The notes beneath the pieces are model-generated. The model had not been told where the DNA came from and searched no databases. It worked only from the letters and a program-made list of their open reading frames with translations. Positions 348 through 34,222 of a stretch of 64,000 bases of DNA are shown piece by piece. The DNA is taken from the NCBI GenBank assembly GCA_964188305.1, contig OZ076887.1; one strand, 5' to 3'. The DNA comes from Podarcis bocagei (lineage: Eukaryota). The translations under genes and the position numbers were made by a program. Each line of letters starts with the position of its first letter. Position 1 is the first letter of the stretch.

Positions 348-2357
348 GTAAGTAGATGCCTATAATGACATGGAAGATTACCCAGGACTATGGGACACAC
401 AAAAGGAAATTGGTACCTTGAGCCCTTTACTATAGTACAAAACATCACTTTATTAATTTAACACTTTGATCCCAGGTTCCTTAATTGGGGATGCCCTCCC
501 CCAAACAAATGATTGGCATTGCCAGCTTTGATAGTAATGACCACCTGTTGGAGAAGAGCAGGTGCCTGGATAGAGCGGCCCTCACCGCCTGGTCCAATCA
601 TAATCGGTAATGTTACAGATTCTTTGTAATAGTAAAGGTTCAATCTAGCTCCACTGCAGGTACTGTACCAACATGCATAGGTTGCCTGTATTGTCCAATA
701 TGACTCTGTTTTTCCTGCCTTCACCTAAGTGCTTACATGTGTAGGCTATATAAGGAGCCCTTGCAGGGAAAAGGAAGCACATGTGCTCCTCCCATATCCT
801 CATCCAACCTTATTTCTCTGTACCTTGTTAGTTACTTGTGTTTTGGAACATATACAAGTAGTAGAGCACATGTGCAGAAGTCAAGTTGGAGGCACAATAT
901 CCATGCATGGACCTTTCATTTCTTGCAACAGCCCCTGTGTGCAAACCCTTAGAAGAAATGGGGCTTTCTGAACCCAGTGGGAATCTTGTGTGTGGTGTTG
1001 TATCCAAGGTGAACTGGGTTAGGCCCAGTGTTTTTGAAATAGTCTGTGTTTTCATTCTTCACTCCCTTACTAATAGTTGATATCTCTAGAGAGGCCCCGA
1101 ACAAACTGTGTTACAAAGAAAGCATGCAGCAAGTTCATCCTGTTGTTAGAAAGTCCAAATAACTTTCTCAATCATTGTGTAAATGTTTCGGTGTTTTTAT
1201 GTTGATTTAATATACCCAAATTGCTTGCTGAATTTGGAGATACCTCTGAATGTTAGAAACTTTTTCTGCCTAAGCCCACCTGCTCCTGCTGCTGAGCCAC
1301 AGCCTCTTACATGCCTATTTCTTATCTTGTCCATTAATAGAATCACACTTTTAAAAGGCATATGTCTGCAGTCCTCATAGCTCAGAAATGAAGTTTTATT
1401 TATTTTCATTATAGATGGTAGTACAAAATCTCACCAAATTTGTTTCAGCCTCTGTTCTTTATGCCAACCATGTTTGCAACCCATATTATTTATAGTTTTT
1501 CCCATCAGTACAGTGCCATAACCTGACAATCTTCAGGGTGAAACTTGACATGCTGATTTTGACTGACCAGTGCAGATTTTTAGTTGTTCTAGTGTATTTG
1601 ACTGATACTAGGACTGATACAAGTTTTCAAAAAGTCTAAAAGTCTTTTTCAAAAAGTCACATGAGGATTTAAATAAGTAGTACTAACAGTAGCTTTTGTT
1701 TTAATTTATCTGTTTGCTATAAAGGGAACAGTATATATGGTTACTGTTGATGTTATAAAGAGCTTTTCATCTTCTCCATTGTTAAGATTGTATTTGTTTT
1801 TTCAGAAACCCTTTGATATAGAGGCATAACTTCAAAAACTTTCATATGCACATTCCCTGCAGTTAAAGCTTATTCAGTTTTGGGCTCATAGGAAATGCTC
1901 TGTTACTTCCTTCTTTCTATATACAAAAGCTGCTGTTAAGACAACGTATTCACTTTTTACATGTTTGATAATGATTTTGTGTAGGCAAAGCTCTCTTAAT
2001 TCCAATTGTGAGTCAGGAAGGGGAAATGTACTGGGTAGCCTTATCCACAGTCCAATTAAGCTGATGTTCTTAAAACCAGCTTTGTCCTACTGATTAAGAC
2101 AGCTTTTTAAACAGTTTGATTGGAGAATGTCAGGGATGACGCAGTGTTTATAGTCGAAGTCTGTTTTAGTCTGTTTCATGGCCTAATTGAGAGAGAGTGG
2201 GGGATAATGGTGGCAATTAGGATTTTTTTTTATTTCATACAAATTATATACCTTTTGATATTTAAAACATTAAAAACCTAAAACTTAAACAGATTAAAAC
2301 ACATCAGTGTTCTAGATACCTAAATACAATTGATTTTAGCAGGCAGCAAGAAGAGTA

Positions 2358-30638: not shown

Positions 30639-32004
30639 TCAGTCTAACAACACTGCTTCCTGTTCTTTTTTGATAGAGTCTAAGACCGAATGGTCACTCT
30701 CTGTGGTTTCAGCATCCCCACCACCTAGCAAAATGGATCTATCCTCGTCTAGAGTAAAGACAGAGTTCTGACTTTGGCACGAATGTTTGACGACTTCATT
30801 AGGCGTAGAGAACGTTTTGTCACACAAGTTGCATTTATAGGGTTTGTTGGTCTGTACCAACATGTTGTCCATTTGGTTGCCTTCCTCAAAAGTACAAAGC
30901 TCCAGAGTCTGCTTGTCCACCATGGTGTAGGTGTCCATGCTTTGGTTTAGACATACATGTCGAGCAGCTTGATTGGCCCGGCAGAAGCTTTTGTCACAGG
31001 TGCTGCACTTGAAAGGCTTGCCAGTATGAATGTACATGTGCTCCCTCCAGTGGCTTTTCTGAATAAATTTGCGCCCACAAATGGAACACTCGTACTTCCG
31101 CCTTTTAACTTCCCTTTCTTGATCTGCTTGCTCCAAGTTGTCTATGTCAGCAATGTCAGAGGGTGGCGGTGTTTCAGCCTGCGGTTGTCCATCAATGATG
31201 GGTGAATCCGAGATCTGCTGCAGCTCGCTATCGCTAATCATTCCAGCTTCAGCAACTTCCATAGAATCTTTTTCAGGAGCGTTATTACAAAGAGATAAAG
31301 GAACGCTACTTTCCCCGTGCTGGCTTGATGAGAAAGGCACCCCTGTGTGAATCTGGAGATGCTCACGCAAACTACTTCGCAAATTGAATCGCCGACCGCA
31401 GAGGTGACAAGCGTAGTATTTGGGGAAGCTTCCGTTCTTTTTCATAATGCTTGGCTTGACGTGCGCAATTGTGAGAGAAGCAGGCTGATCATCTGAGGAG
31501 GAGGCTTCCATGTTGTTTTCATCACCTGGAGGAGAAGGATGAGGAGCAGTAGAAACCAGTTCAGGAGACAATGGAGGCTGTAATGAGTCTGAAGTGGACA
31601 TATTTGTTGGGGGCACTTGAGGCAGCGGTGGTGGTGGTATCTGTGACAGTTGGGTGGCTTCATGCATCTGTTCTTGATTTGCTCTTGATGACTGTGGCCT
31701 TGGTCCTCGAACAGGTTTGTCAGTTGTGGCGGCTGCTTTTGTGGAATTTCTTGCCTGGTGATCCGCAATCTGAATACCGTATAATGAAGATGCCAATGGA
31801 AAAATCTGCTCCGGGTGTGTAAAATTTCCTTGACTGGCAAGGCTAGCCTCTTGAATAAGCGGGAATGCATGCAGAAACTTTATTCCTTGCTCCAATCGAA
31901 CAGGATCGATGAGCTGAGGTGCCATTTTTCCAGTGTACATCAAATGTAAGAGATAGCTGAAAATATCTGGCTGTATGTCAGTTGCCTTCAAACGGACACA
32001 TTCA
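30639..32004 (-). CDS. ZBTB2: ZBTB2 last coding exon (end of BTB domain, linker, four zinc fingers)
   Basis: Acceptor ttctttcag|TGAATGTGTC; ECVRLKATDIQPDIFSYLLHLMYTGK. Two C2H2 fingers (CHLC..HLQIH, CSIC..HMYIH) and two atypical C2HC fingers (CSTC..HVC, CNLC..HSC). Ends IKKEQEAVLLD*. Confidence 0.96.
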
Positions 32005-32179
32005 CTGAAAGAAATTTCAAAACAGTATTAAAGAGGAAGATAAAATGCTTCTGAAGGATTACAATAATTAAGTATACAACTAAGTGCACAATTTTAAGTA
32101 TACAAGAATGCAATCCTAGACATGTTCATATAAATAAAATAAATCTGTTATCATGGTTTAGGCATTACTTCTACTGCTG

Positions 32180-32181
<2 letters not shown>

Positions 32182-32219
<38 letters not shown>
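32182..32219. repeat. (TA)n microsatellite, left flank of the Penelope element
   Basis: Direct reading. Confidence 0.98.
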
Positions 32220-32221
<2 letters not shown>

Positions 32222-32301
32222 TTTCGTAGATTTTCACGGGTACAGGAATGCAGGTTTTGGTGTCTTCGGGTGTCTTCCCGTGTAAGAGTTGGGGTGTCTA
32301 G

Positions 32302-32339
32302 GCGACGTTTCGACGAGGTCTCACTCGTCATCTTCAGGC
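32302..32339 (-). ncRNA. Second copy of the minimal hammerhead ribozyme motif (sense to ZBTB2 pre-mRNA)
   Basis: Exact reverse complement of 33634-33671. Confidence 0.75.
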
Positions 32340-32729
32340 TGGTGCTTTCGGCTTCTTGTTACTGGAACAGAGCAGGATCTCAGTGTTTGAGTTCCTATAA
32401 ATACTGTTGAGGGGGTGTGGTGTATAGCCTCCAACGTTCTGGGCAGAGAGGAAGTTCCCAGGTTAGTGTGTCTTTTCTTCTTTTGTTCATTAATTACTTG
32501 AGGGATATCTTGAGTGATTTCTTGAGTGATATTCTGAGTACCACTTAGGAGGGTCATTAGGTGTGGATTAGTTGCTAAAGCTTTCGTGTCTTGACCTCTT
32601 GACCTTGTGAAGAGTTTTTTCTGAGAAGATGGCTGTACTGCACTTAGTTGTGCTCTGGCTTGGCTTCGTGTATAGGGGCGAGCTGTGGTTTTGTGCCCTG
32701 TGCCAGCCAGATCTGTGTAGGGATTGCAG

Positions 32730-33652
32730 ACCAAAAAATAGCCAATATCCTCAGAAACCCCAAAGATAAAATCCAGTTAGAAAACCAAGGGGTCTATGAA
32801 ATACCCTGCAAAGTCTGCCCAGCCACGTACATTGGACAAACAAACAGACGAATAAATGCACGTATCGCAGAACACAAGAATGCCGTCAAAAAAGAAGAAA
32901 AAACTTCCTCTCTTTACCAACACATGAAAGAAACAGGACACGAAATTAATTTTTCAGATTCCAAATTGCTCTTTAACATGGAACACCACCACAAGAGAAT
33001 AATCATGGAAGCCATCGAGATAGAGAAACACCCTCACAACATGAACAAGCGTGACGATACGTCCCGCCTGCCAGACATCTGGAAAATAGCCCTCCCCACA
33101 AAAACCGACACCAGAACCAGAGGCACACAGAACGCCATCTCCAATCAACCACACCAGACCCAAACCCAGACCCTCTCCACAGATAAATTACAGACACCAT
33201 CCAGTAGCCAAACCATAGTGGCACCTCCGGATGCTGCACCCCCCTGCAATCCCTACACAGATCTGGCTGGCACAGGGCACAAAACCACAGCTCGCCCCTA
33301 TACACGAAGCCAAGCCAGAGCACAACTAAGTGCAGTACAGCCATCTTCTCAGAAAAAACTCTTCACAAGGTCAAGAGGTCAAGACACGAAAGCTTTAGCA
33401 ACTAATCCACACCTAATGACCCTCCTAAGTGGTACTCAGAATATCACTCAAGAAATCACTCAAGATATCCCTCAAGTAATTAATGAACAAAAGAAGAAAA
33501 GACACACTAACCTGGGAACTTCCTCTCTGCCCAGAACGTTGGAGGCTATACACCACACCCCCTCAACAGTATTTATAGGAACTCAAACACTGAGATCCTG
33601 CTCTGTTCCAGTAACAAGAAGCCGAAAGCACCAGCCTGAAGATGACGAGTGA
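32730..33652 (+). pseudogene. 3' part of the Penelope-like ORF: GIY-YIG endonuclease plus a ~195-aa T/Q/S-rich C-terminal extension
   Basis: ILRNPKDKIQLENQ-GVY-EIPCKVCPAT-YIG-QTNRRINARIAEH...SSLYQH...IIMEAIEI...NMNKRDD shows the GIY-YIG signature with conserved R, H, E and N. No stops or frameshifts, but 5'-truncated at the inversion junction. Confidence 0.9.
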
Positions 33653-33671
33653 GACCTCGTCGAAACGTCGC
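33634..33671 (+). ncRNA. Minimal type I hammerhead ribozyme motif (Penelope pLTR)
   Basis: GC-CTGAAGA-T-GACGAG-tgagac-CTCGTC-GAAA-C-GTC^GC: CUGANGA and GAAA core boxes, 6-bp stem II, palindromic ACGU stem III, GUC cleavage triplet. Stem I is only ~2 bp. Confidence 0.75.
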
Positions 33672-33720
33672 CTAGACACCCCAACTCTTACACGGGAAGA
33701 CACCCGAAGACACCAAAACC

Positions 33721-33723
<3 letters not shown>

Positions 33724-33780
<57 letters not shown>
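33724..33780. repeat. (TA)n microsatellite, right flank of the Penelope element
   Basis: Direct reading. Confidence 0.98.
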
Positions 33781-33782
<2 letters not shown>

Positions 33783-34049
33783 CTCTGCAAAATGTGATCT
33801 AATTTATTCCAGAATATATACCTTCAGGGCAGCAGTTCATGAACTTGATCCACAAACTAGTTAGGAGTGAAATCCACAGGATTAGCACTGTAATCGGGTT
33901 AATTGATTTGTGGATGAAGCTGGATGTTTAGTTATTGTGATTTATAAAGCAACTCACATTAGGCTGCCTTAACACTTTCTAATTCCTTCAGACTATTTTA
34001 CCTTAACTAAATACCATTTTTAAAGTGTATTCTTTTATAACTACTGTAC

Positions 34050-34222
34050 CTGCTTTGATGAACAAACAGCATCTTGAAATAGTTGGAAAAAGAGGCAAGG
34101 ACAGATTTGTGTGCCTTGAAGTAAACATCACCAATAGCAACTGTACAGTCACACAGGAAACCAAACTCCCGTTGAGCATTGAGCTGCTGCAGAAGAATCA
34201 GTCCATGGTTGGCTAAATCCAT
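34050..34222 (-). CDS. ZBTB2: ZBTB2 first coding exon (BTB/POZ N-terminus)
   Basis: [57 protein letters not shown]. The acceptor puts the exon start at 34232; donor CAG|gtacag. 173+1366 nt = 513 codons (512 aa). Confidence 0.96.

Follow-up and report, generated by a model that had tools for sequence, protein, structure and literature searches.

HH9 and HH10 are conserved hammerhead ribozymes found in introns of amniotes. They are active in monomeric form, with loop-loop contacts and a stable helix III, and occupy conserved orthologous sites. The minimal hammerheads (min-HHRs) of PLEs are characterized by a base between A9 and position 10.1, a G10.1-C11.1 pair, a palindromic 15.2-16.2 stretch, a long helix II and a short helix I, the latter being 2 bp in Penelope of D. 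virilis, and pairs of motifs on opposite strands have been reported (PMC4209133). For single min-HHRs cleavage was undetectable, and dimers displayed low activity (PMC4209133). Typical of PLEs are copies that are inverted and truncated at the 5' end, targets of (TA)n and, optionally, a tail of 30-40 bp at one end (PMC8557442). Among squamates, PAc, the Poseidon element of Anolis carolinensis (Mob DNA 2024, PMC11167929), has an ORF that begins at stem II and is cut 26 nt after the start codon; the PAc sequence opens with the ATG, a 6-bp stem II that differs from the one reported here, and then GAAACGUC. The PAc hammerhead is inactive without the PAc protein, its core mutants and their rescue have been tested experimentally, and no RNA-seq reads end at the cut site in vivo (PMC11167929). 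PAc activity requires RNA as far as +172. Reverse transcription of PAc starts internally at 111-118 (AC-rich stem-loop), the tail spans the interval from one start site to another, and the DNA that is cut is AT-rich (PMC11167929). Introns that are cut by a slow hammerhead are still spliced, with only fast ribozymes aborting splicing (PMC2995048, summarising Dye 2006 and Fong 2009).

Here, we investigated a hammerhead motif in a window of 64,000 nt, by which we mean the whole stretch of DNA that was analysed. A preliminary description of this DNA had placed the motif in an intron of ZBTB2 and had proposed that it could cut the pre-mRNA of this gene. We find it highly likely that the motif is one of two identical PLE min-HHRs that came with a young insertion and that it is a passenger in the ZBTB2 pre-mRNA. 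The motif is an ordinary example of the minimal type I hammerhead known from retroelements of the Penelope/Poseidon clade, where it sits at the pLTR-ORF junction; every PLE carries one, and both the kind of element and its arrangement are already known.

The host gene is ZBTB2 of a lacertid lizard, encoded on the minus strand. Its large exon, which was used alone in the homology search, is 99% identical to ZBTB2 of Podarcis muralis and 98% identical to ZBTB2 of Zootoca vivipara. The junction ...FVHQS-S-ECVRL fixes the bounds of the intron at 34049-32005, and since the intron ends at 32005, 299 nt of it follow the predicted cut site, matching the distance of about 300 nt to the 3' splice site that had been given earlier. 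The coordinates of the gene, of the insertion and of the two hammerheads are collected in Table 1.

Table 1. Features of the ZBTB2 locus in the 64-kb window, with positions counted from the first nucleotide of the window.
Feature	Position	Strand	Basis
ZBTB2 first coding exon, ATG 34222-34220	34050..34222	-	
ZBTB2 intron holding the insertion; 5' splice-site GT 34049-34048, 3' splice-site AG 32006-32005	32005..34049	-	
ZBTB2 last coding exon (remaining BTB domain and zinc fingers), starts 32004, stop at 30639	30639..32004	-	
(TA)n target tract, left flank	32182..32219	.	
28-nt 'tail', inverted copy only; copy ends +112 from its ATG	32220..32247	-	
Inverted 5'-truncated partial PLE copy (left arm), 100% complementary to 33244-33725	32248..32729	-	
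Unique insertion centre, encodes GIY-YIG endonuclease domain of PLE ORF	32730..33243	+	PF01541, PLE homologues
Right arm, 3' part of main PLE copy	33244..33725	+	
(TA)n target tract, right flank	33726..33780	.	
Minimal type I hammerhead, ZBTB2-sense	32302..32339	-	sequence, descriptor, family model R1
Sense hammerhead: stem I 5' strand	32339-32338	-	
Sense hammerhead: core CUGAAGA	32337-32331	-	
Sense hammerhead: extra U	32330	-	
Sense hammerhead: stem II and loop	32329-32312	-	
Sense hammerhead: GAAA	32311-32308	-	
Sense hammerhead: CG	32307-32306	-	
Sense hammerhead: U16.1-C17 (predicted cut after 32304)	32305-32304	-	
Sense hammerhead: stem I 3' strand	32303-32302	-	
Identical hammerhead, main (ORF-sense) PLE copy	33634..33671	+	exact pattern, model R1

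Read along the minus strand from 32339 to 32302, the motif is GC CUGAAGA U GACGAG UGAGAC CUCGUC GAAA CG UC GC. The catalytic boxes CUGAAGA, GAAA and GUC follow each other in type I order at 32337-32304 (-), and a single unpaired U (32330) separates A9 from G10.1. Stem II has 6 bp (GACGAG/CUCGUC) with a 6-nt loop and is closed by G10.1 (32329)-C11.1 (32312), while A15.1-C-G-U16.1 forms the palindrome ACGU and there is no helix III hairpin. Because C3 is at 32337 and C17 at 32304, the cut site is predicted between 32304 and 32303. Stem I consists of 2 bp only (GC/GC, 32338-32339 with 32302-32303), and no longer stem I, bulged or unbulged, was seen when the flanks of the hammerhead were inspected by eye. 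The sequence thus agrees with the preliminary description in its core boxes, the extra U after A9, the 6-bp stem II, the ACGU palindrome, the cut site and the stem I of about 2 bp, and all of the PLE min-HHR traits of Cervera and De la Pena 2014 (PMC4209133) are present.

An exact pattern has two sites in the window, 32304-32337(-) and 33636-33669(+), compared to 0.00 expected, and a generic min-HHR descriptor recovers exactly these 2 sites in the 64 kb against 0.035 expected from 200 Markov simulations, so that the motif exceeds chance. The family covariance model R1 also returns two sites only in the 64 kb, one per strand, in keeping with the earlier statement that each transcript carries one sense copy; the sense hammerhead scores 68.8 bits (E 2.7e-15) with R1, whose training set includes this copy. 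A candidate at window positions 1495-1544(-) (15.2 bits, E 0.38), with neither a UH site nor a palindrome, was treated as a chance match. The plus-strand hammerhead, with C3-C17 at 33636-33669, is antisense within the ZBTB2 pre-mRNA. In this copy A9-U-G10.1 reads ATG at 33642-33644 (+), with the predicted cut 25 nt downstream of it, and the extra U would therefore be the middle base of a putative start codon. The TGA in loop 2 (33650-33652, +) terminates the endonuclease ORF, in a frame other than that of the ATG. An ATG and a TGA thus lie inside one hammerhead (33642-33652 +), and this is mirrored at 32331-32321 (-). Given that the ATG and the endonuclease TGA are both inside the hammerhead, the ORF of an element in a tandem array would start and stop inside the ribozyme.

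The insertion consists of a PLE truncated at its 5' end, next to which lies a partial copy in inverted orientation. Its arms are 482 nt each, 100% complementary and 514 nt apart, and the window contains no N. The right arm holds the C-terminal tail of the ORF, the hammerhead and then 56 nt to the first 3' end (+84 from the ATG). A mechanically called ORF, the plus-strand open frame 32648-33652, carries the GIY-YIG domain, for which the PF01541 match (E 3.8e-4, 21.1 bits) is under the 22.6-bit cutoff, and the RT portion of this PLE is absent because of the 5' truncation. The PLE ORF stays open for about 190 codons past the GIY-YIG domain, and this stretch aligns to a Phrynocephalus locus (L002) at 38% identity. 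Due to the inversion of the partial copy, one hammerhead is sense to the host gene, and the earlier proposal that an inversion is the source of the host-sense ribozyme holds, the sense copy lying in the inverted partial PLE copy.

Counted from the hammerhead ATG, the 3' ends of the two PLE copies are at +84 (33725) and +112 (32220), 28 nt apart, which, by analogy, agrees with PAc, where reverse transcription has two internal start sites and a 'tail' is known. Together with the ATG at 33642, the 28-nt tail on one side and the (TA)n flanks, these ends make up an arrangement of the PAc type. In Zootoca vivipara (L012), the orthologous ZBTB2 intron aligns collinearly with both flanks and lacks the element; at the site, L012 1446-1457, it has a short AT-rich stretch, as opposed to the (TA)n-element-(TA)n found here (window 32195, 33768). 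Absent from the Zootoca intron, the insertion is lineage-specific, and as its arms are identical, it is young. No target-site duplication is clearly readable at the insertion, where the (TA)n repeat obscures it. We propose that a young 5'-truncated PLE entered the ZBTB2 intron via target-primed reverse transcription, at an AT-rich site that is now (TA)n, and that it would have arrived with the adjacent inverted partial copy, giving the host-sense hammerhead. In the life cycle of the element, the hammerhead would overlap the start codon of the ORF and is thought to process tandem transcripts, either as a dimer or aided by the element protein.

Upon examining the relatives of the ORF, we observe PLE fragments of squamates (Phrynocephalus, Podarcis, Pseudonaja, Erythrolamprus) and insects, many of which also have RVT_1 and HTH_animal domains. 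The motif lies on the same strand and 3' of the GIY-YIG endonuclease here and in 7 related loci, namely L001 (a Logan contig, 90% protein identity), L002 and L003 (the agamid Phrynocephalus), L005, L006 and L011 (the firefly Pyrocoelia) and L008 (the phylloxera Daktulosphaira). This context, together with the GIY-YIG ORF at the locus itself, upholds the earlier assignment to the pLTR-type minimal type I hammerheads of PLEs. The inverted-pair architecture recurs at L002, 2784(-)/4807(+), and at L005, 1148-1178(-)/3786(+), with the hammerhead-bearing ends head-to-head; the plus copy of L002 has G10.1-U11.1, and the decayed minus copy of L005 has a perfect stem II, GGCAAA/UUUGCC. The strict descriptor has no match in L004 (snake), L007 (metagenome), L009 (Aedes) and L010 (Wyeomyia), and model R1 gives weak chance-level matches only on these four loci, which are degraded or differently arranged PLE fragments and were excluded from the alignment. 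Core-only matches at L005 4265-, L007 1761, L008 1739- and L010 5190- were set aside as chance, as they are wrongly placed and none has more than 3 stem II pairs.

Several further observations concern the family as a whole. There are (TA)n tracts after the 3' end of the element at L001 1384-1436 and L003 4546-4872, where they appear as miR-297-like chance matches to Rfam; the family as a whole may thus prefer (TA)n targets. Pieces of the PLE ORF are also found inside squamate gene models, including translin-associated factor X, acyl-CoA thioesterase 12 and an olfactory receptor, which are probably annotation chimeras with intronic PLE fragments. The endonuclease domain of the lizard is 51-64% identical to the firefly PLE copies (L005, L006, L011), and the lizard copies share the loop 2 sequence UGAGAC exactly with firefly L005; this similarity is unusually close for elements of a vertebrate and an insect.

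Next, we investigated conservation in alignment A1, a small covariation set of 9 rows, of which 7 are distinct. GAAACGU and much of the core are invariant in A1, and ACGU is invariant in every aligned copy; with no helix III hairpin present, this accords with the dimer action that the preliminary description had read from the palindromic stem III. Stem II is GACGAG/CUCGUC in lizards, GGGAAA/UUUGCU in firefly L005, GGGAAC/GUUCCC in L011 and GGACUC/GAGUCC in phylloxera (L008), and the squamate copies of the motif are nearly invariant. Across A1, 96.8% of cells are paired and 8 of the 9 pairs change on both sides, these being five of the six stem II pairs, for which there is an ascertainment bias as copies were picked partly by stem II pairing, as well as both stem I pairs and C3-G8, which lay outside the search descriptor. 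None of 500 shuffles reached the observed value on four of five measures, and 39 of 500 did so on further pair types, while controls with slid partners had 25-62% of cells paired. At one stem I position the pair types are GC, UA, AU and CG, and at the other CG and UA; the G10.1-C11.1 pair is kept in all nine rows (as G-U in two), and C3-G8 becomes U3-A8 in two firefly copies, a variant known from Cercyon PLEs (PMC4209133). Among the aligned copies the 2-bp stem I is therefore a conserved, covarying family trait and not a defect of this copy. Conservation and covariation of core and stem II within the family had been named beforehand as a test of the motif, and both are found.

A scan with the Rfam hammerhead models had been suggested as well. 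RF00163, RF00008, RF02275, RF02276 and RF02277 have no match at gathering in the whole window, and at E<=10 none on the 351 nt around the motif or on five related loci (L001, L003, L005, L008, L011), the sole Rfam matches in these scans being (TA)n-driven, miRNA-like chance matches. Since the copies of the relatives are missed equally, the null result reflects the models and not this copy.

During transcription of ZBTB2 the antisense copy (33669-33636) is made first and the sense hammerhead follows about 1.3 kb later. For the 1581-nt pre-mRNA segment, thermodynamic folding, which ignores kinetics, helicases and proteins, predicts an MFE of -1190 kcal/mol with the arms fully paired, in which the antisense copy pairs with the complete C3-C17 stretch (34 bases) and the arm duplex contributes about -1005 kcal/mol. 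In the monomer the hammerhead fold has -8.5 kcal/mol as opposed to an MFE of -10.2 kcal/mol and is not the minimum even locally, and in the dimer the double hammerhead has about -19 to -20 kcal/mol as opposed to -27 kcal/mol for the best cofold, with the intermolecular ACGU helix contributing only about 3 kcal/mol. Stem II could form briefly during transcription. About 390 nt of the second arm precede the sense hammerhead, and we infer that by the time it is transcribed the hairpin can already be zipped for the most part. In the host pre-mRNA the hammerhead would then be zipped into the 482-nt arm duplex, its perfect complement having already been transcribed, and it would have no sense partner for helix III and helix I. 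With the complement made first and no sense partner, we expect from the hammerhead either no catalysis or catalysis too slow for an effect on splicing, and we infer that it very probably does not cut the ZBTB2 transcript in vivo. The predicted, perfect 482-bp dsRNA hairpin of the ZBTB2 pre-mRNA (32248-33725 -) is a candidate substrate of ADAR or Dicer.

The claim that the ZBTB2 pre-mRNA is cut, in cis, in trans with PLE transcripts or with PLE protein, such that expression is lowered or modulated, is in our view improbable. Its strengths are the intact core, the young age of the copy, the clear structural constraint on the motif across the family and the precedent of protein-assisted cutting in PAc (PMC11167929), which are countered by the predicted sequestration of all 34 bases in a perfect 482-nt arm duplex whose opposite strand is made first. 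A dimer in trans would rest on 4 bp and two 2-bp helices, with alternative folds being more stable, and the hammerhead fold is likewise unfavoured in the monomer; in vitro, monomers are inactive and dimers weak (PMC4209133). The ribozyme of PAc, the nearest relative for which activity has been assayed, needs its protein, and no RNA-seq ends are found at its cut site in vivo (PMC11167929); PAc also requires RNA to +172, whereas this copy stops at +112. Slow intronic hammerheads leave splicing unharmed (PMC2995048), and the absence of the insertion in Zootoca indicates that there has been no long-term selection at this site. The preliminary description had added that activity might be negligible, and given the predicted fold and the literature, this caveat is the better reading. 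By analogy with PAc, where the element protein can switch on such a ribozyme, an expressed active relative could in principle act on this copy. That an active, expressed Poseidon-type element, through its protein or partner transcripts, switches on the host-sense min-HHR, which then cuts within the ZBTB2 intron, 299 nt upstream of its 3' splice site, we regard as very unlikely; if true, retroelement activity would be coupled to ZBTB2 output or to the freeing of a 482-bp dsRNA. Cutting of the host transcript would, more generally, make this a rare retroelement ribozyme that regulates a gene, against which the evidence here argues.

Two further accounts question the motif or the insertion itself. 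The match to the hammerhead consensus would be fortuitous if conservation were purely coding, reflecting the end and start of the ORF; the motif does overlap the endonuclease stop codon and an ATG, and the squamate copies are almost invariant, but the insect relatives and PAc keep the pairing despite wholly different stem II and stem I sequences, coding constraint would predict neither the compensated U3-A8 core variant nor the re-paired stems, and the core mutants and rescue of PAc have had an experimental test (PMC11167929), making this account extremely unlikely. It is also highly improbable that the perfect inverted duplication, and with it the sense copy, is an assembly artefact of the PLE insertion. 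Independent genomes show this inverted architecture too (L002, L005), and it has been described as a trait of PLEs; the template positions at which the two arms stop are not the same, and only one side bears the 28-nt tail, in keeping with two RT start sites and not with a mirrored mis-join. Both junctions enter (TA)n, the flanks are collinear with Zootoca, and no N interrupts the window; these points outweigh the trouble that tandem and inverted PLE structures are said to cause in shotgun assemblies (PMC8557442) and the 100% identity over 482 nt, which is unusual for old repeats. Finally, the effect relevant to the host may come from the long perfect dsRNA hairpin and not from the ribozyme, by way of ADAR editing, Dicer products, nuclear retention or slowed splicing. 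The predicted folding energy of the 1581-nt segment, -1190 kcal/mol with fully paired, 100% complementary arms, speaks for such an effect and the many intronic inverted repeats that are tolerated speak against it, so that we consider it possible but rather doubtful. It does not compete with the reading of the ribozyme as a passenger.

With the hammerhead read as a passenger, the locus is mainly of value as a clean annotation, in which a convincing intronic ribozyme motif is fully explained by the architecture of a PLE insertion. It combines several PLE features, namely an inverted partial copy, a one-sided tail, a pair of 3' ends of the PAc kind and an orthologous site that is empty in a related lizard. 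Possibly worth keeping is the match between the two 3' ends in the genome and the reverse-transcription start sites of PAc in vitro, and so is, as a separate finding, the perfect 482-bp hairpin in a host pre-mRNA. In addition, the covarying 2-bp helix I, seen in lizard, firefly and phylloxera, is a small but useful constraint for hammerhead descriptors; the Rfam models miss this whole class.

When compared to described systems, the hammerhead shares with HH9 and HH10 (RF02275, RF02277) the type I fold, the sense orientation in the intron of a protein-coding gene and a retroelement ancestry. Unlike them, it has no stable helix III or loop-loop contacts, no Rfam match and no counterpart in the orthologous Zootoca intron, and neither the stable monomer fold nor the orthologous conservation of a functional intronic hammerhead of their kind was found. 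The metazoan PLE min-HHRs (PMC4209133) likewise lack a helix III hairpin and occur as paired copies on opposite strands, and the Penelope variant of D. virilis also has a 2-bp helix I, although it carries a helix II bulge and a 2-nt palindromic insert in helix III, both of which are missing from this copy. PAc differs in the sequence of stem II and in its loop of 7 nt, as opposed to 6 nt here, and this locus is a 5'-truncated inverted insertion in a host intron with no tandem array. Both are squamate elements of Penelope/Poseidon type in which A9-U-G10.1 is AUG and a 6-bp stem II is followed by GAAACGUC, with a cut about 25-26 nt after the ATG (predicted here), an AT-rich target and an AC-rich downstream region where genomic copies end.
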